A program made the translations under genes and the position numbers. Positions 2,471-27,074 of a stretch of 64,000 nucleotides of DNA are shown here, piece after piece. The number at the start of each line of letters is the position of its first letter. Positions within the stretch are counted from its first letter, which is position 1. A model generated the notes under the pieces. That model was not told the origin of the DNA. It ran no database searches and saw nothing but the letters and a program-made list of their open reading frames with translations. The stretch comes from Haliotis cracherodii (Eukaryota). Location of the stretch: positions 15,376,001-15,440,000 of the forward strand of contig NW_027266297.1 of the NCBI RefSeq assembly GCF_022045235.1, given 5' to 3'.

Positions 2471-3427
2471 AAACACTGCAAGTGACGAGATTGAGCAGCC
2501 ACCACTGGAACACCATGCTGCAAATCAGGTGGCATCCAGCTTTCCCTGATATCTACTGATATTCAATTTGGATCCCATTTGGTTAAAATATTTCAAAGGG
2601 GTCAGTTTAATCATTAGAGCCCAGAAGTGGTAATTAGAGTTGCTATGGATGCTGTTCATGTGAATATTTAACCATGGTTAATCATGCATCCACGAATTGA
2701 TTTTTAAAATCCCTGGGATGTTGACTGAAAAGATTACTTGACAGTCGTCAGCCAATGGTATTTCTAAAACCACTGCACATAGGCCAAGCATTCTCACTAA
2801 AGATCACGGACCATATCCTAGAGCACACTTAGCACTTTTACAGCTCTAGGAAATCTCCAGGCAAATGCCACTTCCAGTGAAATGGAACTATCAGATTTTC
2901 ACAATTACTTCAATGCAAGCCTACATGAAGGGTGGTTAAGTTTGCTTAAATGTTGCTTCAAAATGGATTTATACTATATCTTGGTATGTCAGCTTAATGC
3001 AGAAGGAAAGAAAACTGACACAGGTCGTTGACGTTAAACACTTTGGTGAACCAAACCTACGAGCACAGGTATGGTGCAGACAGACCAAGGATCATAATCA
3101 GAGCAATTCTCAGATCTGAACACAACCAGCGGATCCTGGTACAGCTAAGGGTGCAAATGCAGTGTCCTCCACCACAAGGCCACCATGCCCTAGAAAGCCT
3201 AAACCCAATGGAAACAAAATCACTCTGACAACATAAGATTATTTCAAATAACCCCTTTCAAATACATTAAGCCTTTGCACAAATACGTGCTGGGTTGAAA
3301 ATTAAAAGAAAGAGGTATCTACTCTACAGTGGGACTACATCAAATTTCAAAACACAGTAGGTTTATCTCCTAAATTTCAGCTAAGCATAAAAATGTGATG
3401 AGTGATGCAGAAGTTTACAGAGTCTAC

Positions 3428-21928: not shown

Positions 21929-22087
21929 GGGCGATCGGGTAGCCTAGCGGTTAAAGCGTTCGCTCTTCACGCCGAAGACCCGGGTTTGATTCTCGACACG
22001 GGTACAATGTGTGAAGCCAATTTCTGGTGTCCCCCGCCGTGATAATGCTGGAAATTGCTATAAGTGGCGTAAATAAAACTCACTCAC
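21929..22087 (+). mobile_element. SINE family B
   Basis: TSD TCATGT(T/G)AATAGTC. Confidence 0.88.
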
Positions 22088-23802
22088 TCATGTGAATAGT
22101 CCATGGAATATACCTGTGCATAGTCTCCACTGTTGGTCGAACATTTACACACGCTCGCAGTGAAGATTAGTGGCTCAGTTAAATAATTAACGAATCAAAC
22201 GAGCACAGTGTAAGGAACCATTCTTGGCGTCACAAGTCTTCATTATGCTGGAATACTACAGAAACGGATAACCCACACGAGATGCGTGTTTTACCGTAAA
22301 AGCGTTAGAAGCGGACGTACAATTACCATTGATGTCGTCATTGAAATGCCCGGTCTAGATTTGTAGCCTTGTATTGCTTCAAGGCGCCACTGAAGGAAAG
22401 AACCTTGTCTGTCATACAGACCCTAAAACAAATATTTGCAATACAGCCCTTGCAAGTCTAAAATGTTTGGCAAGTCTAGATTACTGCAGTATCAGGACAA
22501 ATGAAGAAAGTGGGGAGGAGATCTGGACTTGGTTGAAGCATGCGATCCAAATTGCGTGTATAGATGCTCATGATATCAATCACTGGATCGTCTGTCCGAA
22601 CCCGATTATTTACAGACCGCCGTCATATGGCTGAAATATTGGAGTGCGGCGTAAAACAACAAACCAAGCCTTTAACTATATCATTTGCAAAAAATGCCTA
22701 CTCATTTTTTTTATTACCGTGGAATATTTAACTTACAAATGTGGACCTGCACCTTTAACAAATTACATGAATTCACTTCATATATAAAACAATGGGACAA
22801 AACACAACCTTTGCCTCGGAATTTCATTATTTCATGACCTGTACTTCACAACTGCCATTGAGGTTGTGAGTCATGATCGCCACTAGACTCATCATGGCTA
22901 TATAGTATGACAAATGGAATATGTTGCAATAACCATAATTGGTTAATATCGAGAAATGAGCGCGATTATACAGCGCCATTTCTTCGTGTCTGTCTTAAAA
23001 CTGAGAGCTTGGTTTTCAGCTTTAGTTTAAAGTTTGTAAGCGATTATACAAATGATAACGCGACAGCATTCACATGGCGCATTAGCCGTGTTTGTTTCTC
23101 TGGGTATTGGTTGTGATTCGCTGTGCGGGTGACATAGAGGTTATCACGCGAGTGTGTTTGGGGATGGTAAATATCCTGCATTAGGAATAAACATTGTATT
23201 TAGCGAGCCTTGGCGAGCTAAATACATAGTGTTTATTCCTAATACAGGATATTTACCATCCCCAAACACACAAGTGTGATAACCTCTTTATCATATAATG
23301 TCATTCTTTAATTCTGTGCTTCAAAATCGCTTTCCCTCTCTCACAAGCATTACCGAAACATTGCGAGTTTTCCTGGAATGCGCGCATTAATGTTTATTAC
23401 GTCACAGGGTAAGTGATGTGTCAGTCGGACAGTGACAGTAGCCAATATAGTTCCAACTGAAGTCTGTTTCTTATACTGTGGCGAAGCAACATATACGCAA
23501 AACAACAACTGTTTTTAATTGCTTTTCGCGGCAATCCATCGGTCTGTCCGCTAGAGTAACTGCCCTTTGTCAAAGGGAAGCTACTCTAACCCTAGTCTAT
23601 GAGACGTCACGGCCACGGTCAGACGTTGTTGACAGTCGGTCTGTCCTGTCATAACGATAAGAAGTGTAGTCAGATGTACACACAGCGACAAAACGAAACA
23701 AGGTAACAATTCAAACATATTTCTGCCAAATACAACTATTTTAATTTGTGGAGGAGGTTTCAAGGCGCAGAGGCCTACAAGCACAGGTATGGCTACTGAT
23801 CC

Positions 23803-25126
23803 CACAGGGCCACGTATAGCCATACTATACTGACTGTGCAGACATTTACGACTTTATTGTGTATGAAGTGTCACATGACAATGAGGTAACCTCCAAATGG
23901 TTTCAGAGTTTTGTCACTGATGAGGTAGTCAGAGATTCCCAATCTGAAGAACGGAAAACAAGCAGACAGGAACTTTTGGAGGAAGTAATCCGAAAATACA
24001 CATGTATGTCTTCCGCCCAGTTCCGGAAGGAATTTAAAAGAAAAATGAAAGCCAAGAAAGAGGAAGCACACCGAAAGCAAATAAGAATGAGAACTGAGAA
24101 GACCAGTGATTCCAAAGCATCCAACGAAATTGGAAAACTAAAATTCAGTGAGGACAAGAGTTCTGGACACATTGCGACACACAGACGTTTGCAAAGTGAA
24201 CTACAGTTAAATTCATCATACTTTGAATCTTGTAATTTTCGAAAACTCAAGTTAGAAATGCTATGTAAGGCCTATGGTCTTTCTGTTTCAAAAAAATCAA
24301 CAAAGAAAGACTTGGCAGCTAAACTTGCCGCAGAAATTTCTACCGTGGATAGCATACCCAATACAGAATATCTAGACCTTAAAGACACAGACTCAACTAA
24401 AATTACACCAACAGCACCATGTTCAACAGCATCATGTTCAAAAGCATCATGTTCATTTCAAGCACCTGATGAAGATCTCCCGCGTGCAAAAAGGCAGAAA
24501 ACCACCAAATCAATTGGAAAGGGAAAAGGAAAAGGAAAATCTAGGCAGGAGATAACTGTATTGAATCCATGCACAAAATGCAAAGAAGAGTGTTCTTTTG
24601 ATTATATCATTTGTGACTTGTGTGGCAATGTATACCATTTCAAATGTCTATCCCTTCAAGACAATGAAGAAGAGTTACAGTCAGATGAATGGTATTGTAC
24701 TGACTGTCAGAGTACAATTTACTGACAAAAGTTTACATGTGACTCGCAGTGTTGTATTATAATTAGACCAATGGTTATTATGTTTACTTGTTCATAAATC
24801 TATTTTTATCATGTGTCATGTGAGAAATATTATCTGATCAATATGCACATTAGTGGTGACAATGCTCTGTTTCTTTGTTGATGAATCTATTTTGGTCTTG
24901 TATGATGTCGGACAATGACAGACTGTCAGTTGTTGATCTCAGTATTCCAGTATGTTTCATGGACATTATTACCAGAAAAATTACATTATGATATTTGTTC
25001 TTGTGAAGATAGTAAAAATTATAATTACTATCACATGTTGAACTATGCTTGTACAGGTTTGAATCTTGCATGTGAATTATCTTCAGATATTTTTGTCAGT
25101 ACAGTATGGCTATACGTGGCCCTGTG
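23803..25126 (+). mobile_element. Non-autonomous TIR DNA transposon, 1324 bp (P-element-like termini CACAGG; hAT not excluded)
   Basis: 32-bp TIRs at 23803-23834 and 25095-25126 (31/32 identical); perfect 8-bp TSD ACTGATCC at 23795-23802 and 25127-25134. Confidence 0.92.
23859..24725 (+). CDS. Transposon-borne ORF, 5'-truncated: helical/basic region, SAP/HeH-like motif, GK repeat, C-terminal PHD finger
   Basis: 288 stop-free codons, and the frame stays open back into the left TIR; C4HC3 PHD CTKC..CDLC-GNVY-HFKC..WYCTDC at 24570-24707; KLKLEMLCKAYGL..KKSTKKDLAAKL SAP-like at about 24237-24327; first in-frame ATG at 24006. Confidence 0.75.
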   Translation: MYEVSHDNEVTSKWFQSFVTDEVVRDSQSEERKTSRQELLEEVIRKYTCMSSAQFRKEFKRKMKAKKEEAHRKQIRMRTEKTSDSKASNEIGKLKFSEDKSSGHIATHRRLQSELQLNSSYFESCNFRKLKLEMLCKAYGLSVSKKSTKKDLAAKLAAEISTVDSIPNTEYLDLKDTDSTKITPTAPCSTASCSKASCSFQAPDEDLPRAKRQKTTKSIGKGKGKGKSRQEITVLNPCTKCKEECSFDYIICDLCGNVYHFKCLSLQDNEEELQSDEWYCTDCQSTIY

Positions 25127-25873
25127 ACTGATCCCGCTTGGCTAGGCCTCGTGCCCTCGCCAAATTGTTTCGAAATTTATATCTCCAAAGTTGCCAAAAC
25201 TTATAAAATGCCTTAGCTACGTCACAGTTAGACACAGATTTTCAGTATATTAGACTGTTCTTTTGATAATGATAGCAATTATCCCTGTAGTTTATCCAGA
25301 TTCCCGATGGTTAATTCTGACTCGATTTACATGGGCGACGCCATGTTTTTTATAAACAGTGAAAGTAGTCCCTACTTGACCTTTGATATTTGCATCTCTA
25401 TCCGCATATAACCCCAACGGATATCGTTTTTATTCGTTGGCCTTATCCTGCCGAGAAACCTACCCATTATATGATAAATGTCAGGATCCGCAGGTCATTG
25501 GTTCGAATCCCAGTTCCGCCTTGATTATGATGCTGGGTTTGCAGCACAACATCCATCGTGGGTGTTTTCACGCACAGAGGTAAAGGTACGCGACCTGCGT
25601 CATTATACGCGCTTTCCTTTTTCAATGCATTTAATGCTTTTATTCAAAATTTTCACAAAACGGCAAGCACATAACGCGCTCGGTTGTCAATGGGGGCAAA
25701 CCCTGCAATTTATAAATTTCTATCGGAGCCTTTCTATCTTGTCTTGCACAACACAACATCCACGTACAGTGAGAAGTGTCGTAAAGTCATTTAGCTACCG
25801 CCCCGACCCAAGCCAACATAACTCCCTGACATGTCACCCGCACAGCGAATACAGGAGTTATCTCCCCTTTAAC

Positions 25874-26149
25874 TATGGAATACCAAGCTCCTCACAGCGA
25901 TAGTACGTTCCCGGAGCTCTCTATACTATATTACCGAGAGTGTAACGAAGGTGTCACGCGCTGGGAAGGAGCTTGTATGGAATACCAAGCTCCTCACAGC
26001 GATAACACGTTCCCACTCGAGAGTGTAACGAAGGTGTCACGCGCTGGGAAGGAGCTTGTATGGAATCCCAAGTTCCTTCCCAGCGCGACACCTTCGTCAC
26101 ACTTTCGGAGAGCTCTGCGAACGTGATATCGCTGTGAGGAGCTTGTATT
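25874..26149. repeat. Foldback repeat: three 80-100-bp units arranged forward-forward-reverse
   Basis: Units start at 25874 and 25976, with an inverted unit at 26069-26149; each is bounded by CAAGCTCCT/AGGAGCTTG. Confidence 0.85.
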
Positions 26150-27074
26150 AAATCCTAGAAGGGCTCGCCCTTACATTATAACACATTTTGCTTCTTTCGT
26201 AAGCGCGACTGTGTCCTTCTAGGATTCCGGATTTCTGTCTACGAGTCGGTTATTGTCATTAAGTATCGAACCCTATTCAGTCACAAAGATGAGATCATCC
26301 GTAATCCCATATGGATTGTCGTTAAACCAAATATTTCAGTATTCTGGTTTTATATGGGTTTTACGCAGACAAAAGGTGCACTAGGCATTTAAAAGCTGTA
26401 GTGTCAGGAAAAATAGACATGCATTTCATCTTCTTGTATTCTTCCAATTTGTTTTGGTATTGTTACTAATATCCTGTCTTCCTTCGTGGTAAAAGCTACA
26501 ACTGAATGTTGAAATCACTTGTCAACGCTCGCCCATGTCCGTAAGCGGCTTGTCCCGGAATAATACGAGTTATCACGAGTGATGCTGGTCTGAGACGCGT
26601 AGCGAATAAACCATTTTCCCGTTGTGAGTTATCTGTCCCTGATAACACATGACCATGGACGACTCCCGTCACCCGTAGGCCCCGACTGGTCGCAAATGTG
26701 TTGGGATTTAATTTAAAGCTTCAAAATGACATACTGACGTTAAAAACAAAACAAAATTACACACTCATATCTTGTTTAAGTAACTGGGTGATGTAATATA
26801 CACATGTTCATTCACATTGCTAATGGCCAGTGATTTATTCAAGATGGTTACCTGAACAACCTTATTGTCTAATCAGCGGGGAGGCGTAATAAACACTAGA
26901 TATATAGGCAGCGTACAAGTGAATCGATAGTTATGGCATTACGTAGGTAGATGCTTGGGATTTTATATGTACAAAAACATAAAACAGACTGAACTCTGAA
27001 GAAATGGTGGTTCAGTCGTCTTAGGCACAGTAATTCGCTATACATGCTATGGACATGCTCGAAACCTAAAATCG

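Follow-up and report, generated by a model that had tools for sequence, protein, structure and literature searches.

We analyzed a stretch of 64,000 nucleotides (nt) from the genome of the abalone Haliotis cracherodii (NCBI RefSeq assembly GCF_022045235.1, contig NW_027266297.1, positions 15,376,001 to 15,440,000 of the forward strand), hereafter called the window, and found that the segment at positions 23135–25478, read on the minus strand, is very probably one copy of a high-copy, protein-less, non-autonomous rolling-circle transposon of the Helentron/Helitron2 (HLE2) type, i.e., a HINE. The element represents a new family of a known kind of mobile element, and no sign of a new mobile-element class was seen in the abalone data. 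The points of note in this Helentron-type family are a 152-nt hairpin at the 3′ end, a joint of the element ends that lies inside a 2-nt bulge, and a long, asymmetric target motif that echoes the element ends, the very long hairpin and the long motif being the unusual ones. A first-pass annotation of the window, made from the sequence alone, had described the segment as a split-palindrome mobile element. The split palindrome is real in substance and corresponds to the known asymmetric terminal inverted repeats flanking a 3′ hairpin, which is here unusually long.

The boundaries of the element were observed directly by comparison with other copies in the genome (1.18 Gb in 80 contigs). On the plus strand of the window, every copy in a 28-copy family alignment started with ...A|TAGAGGTTATCAC and ended with ...CATTATATGATAAA|. 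The heptamer ATAGAGG was common to all 28 aligned copies, and the empty sites described below assigned only the A before TAGAGG to the flank. On this evidence, the left end is at 23135 (TAGAGG...), 2 nt outside the position 23137 given in the first-pass annotation. The genome comparison, which that annotation had proposed as the way to define the boundaries and a target consensus, thus yielded ends at 23135 and 25478 and the target RTAnA|TnnnnnTAY. Boundaries at 23134 and 25477 are equally possible, because the base preceding the element and the last base of the element are both A. By convention the element is read on the minus strand, so that 25478 is its 5′ end and 23135 its 3′ end.

Several copies were inserted in local repeats with uninterrupted neighboring units, and their joined flanks restored those units with zero gap and zero overlap. 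The joined flanks of copy L018 were identical to a paralogous empty site at 55 of 60 nt in an ungapped alignment, those of copy L005 corresponded to three repeat units with 100% identity, and those of copy L026 also agreed with a paralogous empty site. The window contains an uninterrupted copy of its own target in inverted orientation (Table 1). Since the flanks rejoin to uninterrupted units without gap or overlap, there is no target-site duplication at these four independent empty sites (L018, L005, L026 and the window), in agreement with the first-pass annotation and as expected of HLE2. The empty site in the window reads TGACA|TGTCA, a 10-nt palindrome (TGACATGTCA), rather than the 12-bp palindrome TGACATA+TGTCA reported earlier. 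The empty sites of the other copies were non-palindromic (GGACA|TCCCA, ATACA|TAGTA and ATCAA|TAGAA), which rules out a palindromic target as a general feature of the family. As a separate observation, the host DNA without the element forms a perfect 26-nt inverted repeat with arms about 340 bp apart, one of which was hit by the insertion; the arms may be the ends of a small inverted-repeat element.

The empty sites bear directly on whether a cut-and-paste (DDE) transposase moves the element as a foldback or miniature inverted-repeat element, a type with symmetric terminal inverted repeats and a target-site duplication on either side. Short terminal inverted repeats, a long palindrome, a length of about 1 kb, the absence of coding sequence and the high copy number would all suit such an element. 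However, the lack of a target-site duplication at four independent sites already contradicts it, the repeats are asymmetric, with one terminal and the other 165 nt inside, and exact head-to-tail joints of the element exist (see below). We consider this explanation hardly credible.

The anatomy of the element, on the minus strand, consists of a 5′-T with a 14-nt repeat, an interior of about 830 nt and then, toward the 3′ end, the repeat in inverted orientation, the terminal stem-loop and one or two further bases. The inverted copy lies about 165 nt before the 3′ end, and the hairpin stops 1–2 nt short of the element end. The first-pass annotation had noted the 14-mer beside the hairpin and its distant reverse complement, and the correspondence between the two is exact. 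The repeat is itself near-palindromic (TTAT-CAT-ATAA), and the 5′ repeat was near-invariant in the aligned copies, with a recurrent A/G at one position and single changes in two copies. The hairpin described earlier was likewise confirmed: a single-stranded DNA fold of positions 23130–23293, a long imperfect inverted repeat, had an energy of −69.5 kcal/mol, compared with −15.2 ± 3.0 kcal/mol for shuffled sequences (z = −18.2), and 0 of 200 shuffles folded as well. No transposition enzyme was found to be encoded by the element in the open reading frame (ORF) list or in a Pfam domain search, consistent with the earlier proposal that the enzyme would be supplied in trans.

This arrangement closely follows published descriptions. 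In Helitron2 elements, the 5′ base is T, the 5′ repeat lies 0–2 bp from the end and the 3′ repeat precedes the hairpin (PMC3627910); in HLE2 elements, the repeats measure 12–16 nt and a stem-loop follows the right one (HELIANO, PMC11417382); and HINE/DINE-1 elements are non-coding, with 12–15-bp subterminal repeats, a 3′ palindrome and no target modification (PMC4067079). HLE2 repeats are 8–16 nt long, with 0–2 nt between the 5′ repeat and the end of the element and with the 3′ repeat in a subterminal position; the repeats observed here are 14 nt long, with the 5′ one 0 nt from the end.

Table 1. Features of the element and its surroundings in the window (ranges are window positions; a dot marks a feature given without strand).
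Feature	Position	Strand	Evidence
Non-autonomous Helentron-type element (HINE, very probable), with foreign nested insertion	23135..25478	-	28-copy family alignment; paralogous empty sites of L026, L018 and L005 (three units); inverted copy of the target in the window
5′ asymmetric terminal inverted repeat, TTTATCATATAATG on the element strand, beginning at the extreme 5′ end	25465..25478	-	Inverted-repeat search; near-invariant across copies; definition in PMC3627910
3′ subterminal inverted repeat, CATTATATGATAAA on the element strand (TTTATCATATAATG on the plus strand), directly upstream of the terminal hairpin	23287..23300	-	Inverted-repeat search; genome 25-mer count
3′-terminal hairpin, 152 nt, arms ~23136-23204 and 23217-23287	23136..23287	-	DNA fold; ~99% conserved in fetched copies, which had been picked by hairpin similarity
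TA at the element terminus, foot of the hairpin	23135..23136	-	Joined-end fold; same joint at 14 genomic loci
Unrelated nested cut-and-paste transposon, 1,324 bp, 32-nt terminal inverted repeats CACAGGGCCACG...	23803..25126	.	Repeat search; lacking in other aligned copies
288-aa ORF, C-terminal PHD finger, part of the nested transposon	23859..24725	+	Pfam PHD, E = 3.2e-7
Local inverted copy of the uninterrupted target, ...GGGTGACA|TGTCAGG	25825..25850	-	Equals 23116-23134 + 25479-25485 at 26/26 positions

A search with the hairpin region returned more than 1,400 first-look candidates in the genome, and the 40 that were scored were 99–100% identical. The hairpin was accompanied by the distal 14-mer within one unit of about 1.0 kb in 28 of 30 fetched loci; this unit corresponds to window positions 23135–23802 joined directly to 25135–25478. 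In the other two loci, the distal end was not seen within the 1.5 kb fetched. The 2.2-kb spacing between the hairpin and the distal 14-mer noted in the first-pass annotation is therefore present in the window but specific to this copy, since it results from the 1,324-bp nested transposon. A 25-mer spanning the internal 14-nt repeat and the hairpin foot occurred 1,031 times in the genome, the end with the 14-nt repeat 967 times and the hairpin end 952 times, the latter two with one flank position restricted to non-G, while each control pattern gave 0 matches. The near-equal counts, together with the co-occurrence in the fetched loci, indicated that both ends are linked and that the hairpin is not an independent miniature element, the outcome that would have spoken against the linkage drawn earlier. 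The family comprises about 1,000–1,200 copies of about 1.02 kb each, or roughly 1.1 Mb of the abalone genome.

The mean identity among 26 independent copies was 95.8% (range 92–99%). The terminal 120 nt at the repeat (5′) end, which had no role in the selection of copies, showed a conservation of 0.99, compared with 0.79–0.97 in the interior, a pattern to be expected where source copies depend on intact ends. Copies with identical flanks recurred every ~12–18 kb at three places, C14:11.04–11.07 Mb (L026, L027 and L028), C2:1.18–1.22 Mb and C1:24.74–24.77 Mb; local segmental triplications copied the element together with its surroundings here, and the recurrences do not represent independent insertions. 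On contig C3, at about 271,971–286,969, at least 12 hairpin ends with the same 10-nt flank CA(A/C)TAATACA were spaced 74 to about 7,500 bp apart, and this array looks like a tandemly amplified, satellite-like array that may have been seeded by a hairpin end with its flank.

When the two ends of the element were joined, the resulting sequence ...GATAAA|TAGAGG... was the reverse complement of the internal sequence with 2 extra nt. In a fold of the last 30 nt of the element followed by its first 181 nt, the 14-nt repeats paired and prolonged the hairpin (−76.1 kcal/mol), and the joint dinucleotide A|T (25478 then 23135) formed the only 2-nt bulge in an otherwise continuous stem of about 90 bp. 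The continuous palindrome of about 180 bp predicted earlier for a circular form is borne out in that the repeats prolong the hairpin, but it is not exact, because the A/T bulge interrupts it at the joint. Bao and Jurka (2013) proposed that the replication end point is marked when the two repeats pair (PMC3627910), and for a Helitron2-like element of a fungus the joined ends have been demonstrated by PCR (PMC5148889). In the abalone genome, the joint ...CATTATATGATAAA|TAGAGGTTATCAC... was found at 14 loci, 8 of them exact and 6 with one mismatch (control, 0), so that head-to-tail copies make up about 1% of the family. Such joints are what rolling-circle read-through or the insertion of a circle-derived multimer would be expected to leave, and they do not by themselves prove free circles.

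The genome also carries candidate enzymes. The RepHel transposase of Helitron2 and Helentron elements contains an HUH nuclease domain (PMC3627910, PMC11417382), and DUF6570 is the marker of HLE2. A profile search of the genome gave 31 Helitron_like_N and 35 DUF6570 matches. Of the 31 Helitron_like_N matches, 18 were inside open frames longer than 2,600 aa, the longest of 3,207 aa, and five further open frames measured 1,498–2,160 aa. The genome encodes at least 18 intact Helentron RepHel genes. The domain set known from HLE2 (Rep, PIF1 and DUF6570, with an endonuclease in Helentrons) was present. A Pfam search of one frame, at locus L074, identified OTU, DUF6570, Rep and PIF1 helicase domains. 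The nearest database proteins were from Haliotis rufescens (99% identity) and H. cracherodii (96% identity), and several of the nearest proteins carried an Exo_endo_phos endonuclease domain; because the 99%-identical H. rufescens protein is among them, the L074-type protein was classed as Helentron. The locus itself (C1:42836001–42846000) is an apparently intact autonomous Helentron, whose frame starts at position 3417 and runs off the piece, with about 2,640 aa in all. Upstream of the frame are a 301-bp tandem repeat (3.9 copies, 541–1707) and several inverted copies of a short interspersed repeat. When the genome was searched with L074:1–6400, the 5′ boundary of this Helentron family was not reached within the piece; the homology and the 301-bp repeat extended to the start of the piece, and the boundary must therefore be located further upstream.

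The target preference of the family was derived from 100 listed flanks per side and from whole-genome counts, and on the plus strand of the window it reads 5′-RTAnA|TnnnnnTAY-3′. Position −1 held A without exception, both among the 100 listed flanks and among the 26 fetched copies. Positions −4 and −3 were TA in 629 of 952 cases and positions +7 and +8 were TA in 671 of 967, against a chance expectation of about 10% per TA dinucleotide, and a hand count of the 100 listed flanks gave T at position +1 in about 56%. Only one flank base was invariant, and position −2 varied freely. The part of the target on the hairpin side, ATAnA|, matches the other end of the element itself, ATAAA|, and the downstream TAT(C) is reminiscent of the TTATC at the foot of the hairpin, although its distance is one base shorter than in the actual joint. 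As the two halves of the target resemble the two ends of the element, the target loosely imitates the joined ends.

This resemblance bears on two further explanations of how the element moves. Cryptons use a tyrosine recombinase, lack a layout of terminal repeats and hairpin, and share a short identical core between joint and target. A Crypton-like element, whose double-stranded circle recombines at its joint with a joint-like genomic site, would account for the absence of a duplication, for the exact head-to-tail joints and for a target partly like the joined ends (ATAnA| and ATAAA|, with TATC about 7–10 nt downstream). In contrast, asymmetric terminal repeats with a terminal hairpin are the defining Helitron2/Helentron layout, no identical crossover core was seen (one invariant flank base, with −2 free), and the downstream motif is one base closer in the targets than in the joint of the element. 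In addition, the genome carries many intact Helentron RepHel genes, and the element has no coding capacity, although no search was made for tyrosine recombinase genes in the genome. We therefore regard a Crypton-like origin as very unlikely. The first-pass annotation had left open circular movement by either a Crypton-type or an HUH enzyme; the HLE2 layout, the RepHel genes and the 14 joints favor the HUH and circle option, whereas the Crypton option is disfavored.

A still more doubtful explanation is that, instead of a Helentron RepHel, an HUH transposase with a single domain (IS200/IS605 or IS91 type) moves the element. An end hairpin, the absence of a duplication and a target resembling an element end would be in accordance with it. 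However, only one end of the element has a strong hairpin, and the layout matches HLE2 exactly. To our knowledge, no transposase of these types occurs in animals, a point that also counts against this explanation, although no search for such an enzyme was made here.

Several observations weigh against the assignment of the family to the HLE2 type. The T|T insertion rule of HLE2 does not hold, because only a single T is present at the insertion point in the empty sites. On the element strand the flanks can be read either as N|T (A in 22 of the 100 listed flanks by hand count) or as T|N. T|T insertion was ruled out, the empty sites being one T short. The hairpin is about 4–15 times longer than described 3′ stem-loops. 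Helitron2 elements are described with a mini-hairpin at the 5′ end, whereas here the repeat TTAT-CAT-ATAA yields no more than a 4-bp A/T stem, and a fold of the 5′ region was no better than shuffled sequences (z = −1.6). An autonomous copy ending in these termini did not turn up: the six of the 31 RepHel loci that were compared by coordinates (contigs C1 and C2) had no family end within about 200 kb. Neither the 3.6-kb pieces around 30 Rep domains nor the 10 kb of L074 showed any similarity to the family. As for the target, sites other than T|T have been published, namely TNAT|A in Fusarium FoHeli1/2 (PMC5148889) and the exception TTTT|T/C in Chlamydomonas (PMC3627910).

On the Helentron-type assignment, a mechanism of movement can be proposed. 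The element would be moved in trans by a RepHel transposase, a fusion of an HUH nuclease and a PIF1-type helicase that in this genome would also carry OTU, DUF6570 and endonuclease domains; the link of this family to a particular RepHel protein, the circular intermediate and the role of the bulge are matters of inference. RepHel would nick one strand at the 5′ end, unwind it and halt at the 3′ hairpin. The 3′ end would then meet the 5′ end in a single-stranded circle or by read-through, where the 14-nt repeats could pair and prolong the hairpin, leaving the A|T of the joint as a 2-nt bulge. This bulge is the proposed point of cutting and rejoining, and the strand would finally be inserted without duplication at RTAnA|TnnnnnTAY sites.

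The choice of target could conceivably be templated by the element's own DNA, in a manner analogous to that of IS608, although we consider this rather unlikely. The bases just outside the hairpin end on the element strand, T-n-T-A-Y, copy the 5′ start of the element, T-T-T-A-T. In a templated scheme, base pairing between these target bases and the 3′ subterminal repeat could span the 2-nt A/T bulge that also forms in the joined ends, and a bulged long hairpin would serve the RepHel nuclease as the place of cutting and joining at both the joint and the target. The evidence is explained equally well if a protein simply recognizes one sequence both at the element end and in the target.

The transposon nested within the element has terminal inverted repeats beginning with CACAGGG and is flanked by an 8-bp duplication, ACTGATCC, at 23795–23802 and 25127–25134. 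The other aligned copies of the family contained a single ACTGATCC and no insert, and they therefore act as empty sites of the nested transposon. Its PHD-finger ORF (Table 1) is the only sizeable open frame in the region. To the right of the Helentron-type element, positions 25495–25600 resemble the 3′ half of a tRNA (GGTTCGAATCC) and had about 110 first-look places in the genome with about 73–87% identity, suggesting that this stretch is probably a tRNA-derived short interspersed element. ARAGORN reported no tRNA gene at 25495–25600, and no known RNA family or tRNA scored above threshold in positions 22000–26500. Further to the right, at 25870–26150, direct repeats with periods of 83–102 bp and inverted repeats of up to 38 nt were observed, which form an unrelated tandem or foldback structure.

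For annotation, an apparent oddity becomes a member of a named class, as a non-autonomous Helentron-type family. For transposon biology, the family offers a clean natural set of substrates with precise ends, some 1,000 insertion sites that share an asymmetric motif of 15 nt, and 14 exact head-to-tail joints, with the joint in the 2-nt bulge of a stem of about 90 bp. We know of no biochemical account so far of how Helitron2/Helentron enzymes recognize ends and targets, and the family therefore supplies direct oligonucleotide designs for such tests.

Among known systems, the canonical Helitrons (HLE1) have 5′-TC and 3′-CTRR termini, a short hairpin 10–12 nt before the end, an A|T target and no terminal inverted repeats. 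Membership in this group was ruled out, as the abalone element starts with TTTATC, ends with CCTCTA and has terminal inverted repeats, the 5′-TC and 3′-CTRR being missing. IS608 and IS91 are bacterial HUH transposons with a circular joint as an intermediate. They resemble the abalone family, as its movement is proposed here, in single-strand transposition without duplication, in end hairpins, in insertion beside a short end-related sequence and in the circular joint, but they use another enzyme with no helicase fusion. IS608 further differs in having hairpins at both ends, and its target selection by base pairing is proven, whereas it is hypothetical for the present family.

The FoHeli1/2 elements of Fusarium oxysporum (Chellapan et al. 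2016, PMC5148889) share Helitron2-like termini with asymmetric repeats and have a TNAT|A target with the same one-base T ambiguity; joined ends were detected there as well, arguing for a circular form. They differ in that the host is a fungus, the elements are autonomous, with 5–11 kb, and their hairpins are short. The joints of the abalone family were seen only as genomic head-to-tail copies and not as free circles.

The HINE/DINE-1 elements (Thomas, Vadnagara and Pritham 2014, PMC4067079) are likewise non-coding, deletion-type elements of high copy number with 12–15-bp subterminal inverted repeats, a 3′ palindrome and no target modification, and they share with the abalone family a near-palindromic subterminal repeat and an association with tandem arrays (here the hairpin-end array on C3 at ~272–287 kb). 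In contrast, HINE palindromes are 5–10 bp long and lie 8–35 bp from the end, whereas the hairpin arms of the abalone family are about 70 bp, and HINEs have T runs at their boundaries and T-rich targets, neither of which is seen here. In the same paper, membership is decided by a repeat with at least 11 bases identical to those of a Helentron (PMC4067079); similarity of the last 60 bp is a further sign that an autonomous element has the same termini.

Compared with Helitron2/HLE2, the present family has a stem-loop of 152 nt and a 3′ repeat about 165 nt from the end, instead of 20–30 nt, its target is RTAnA|TnnnnnTAY and not T|T, and its 5′ hairpin is marginal. It is like Helitron2/HLE2 in its repeat at the 5′ end, the inverted copy upstream of a 3′ stem-loop, the 5′ T, the absence of a target-site duplication and the DUF6570-bearing RepHel genes in the same genome.

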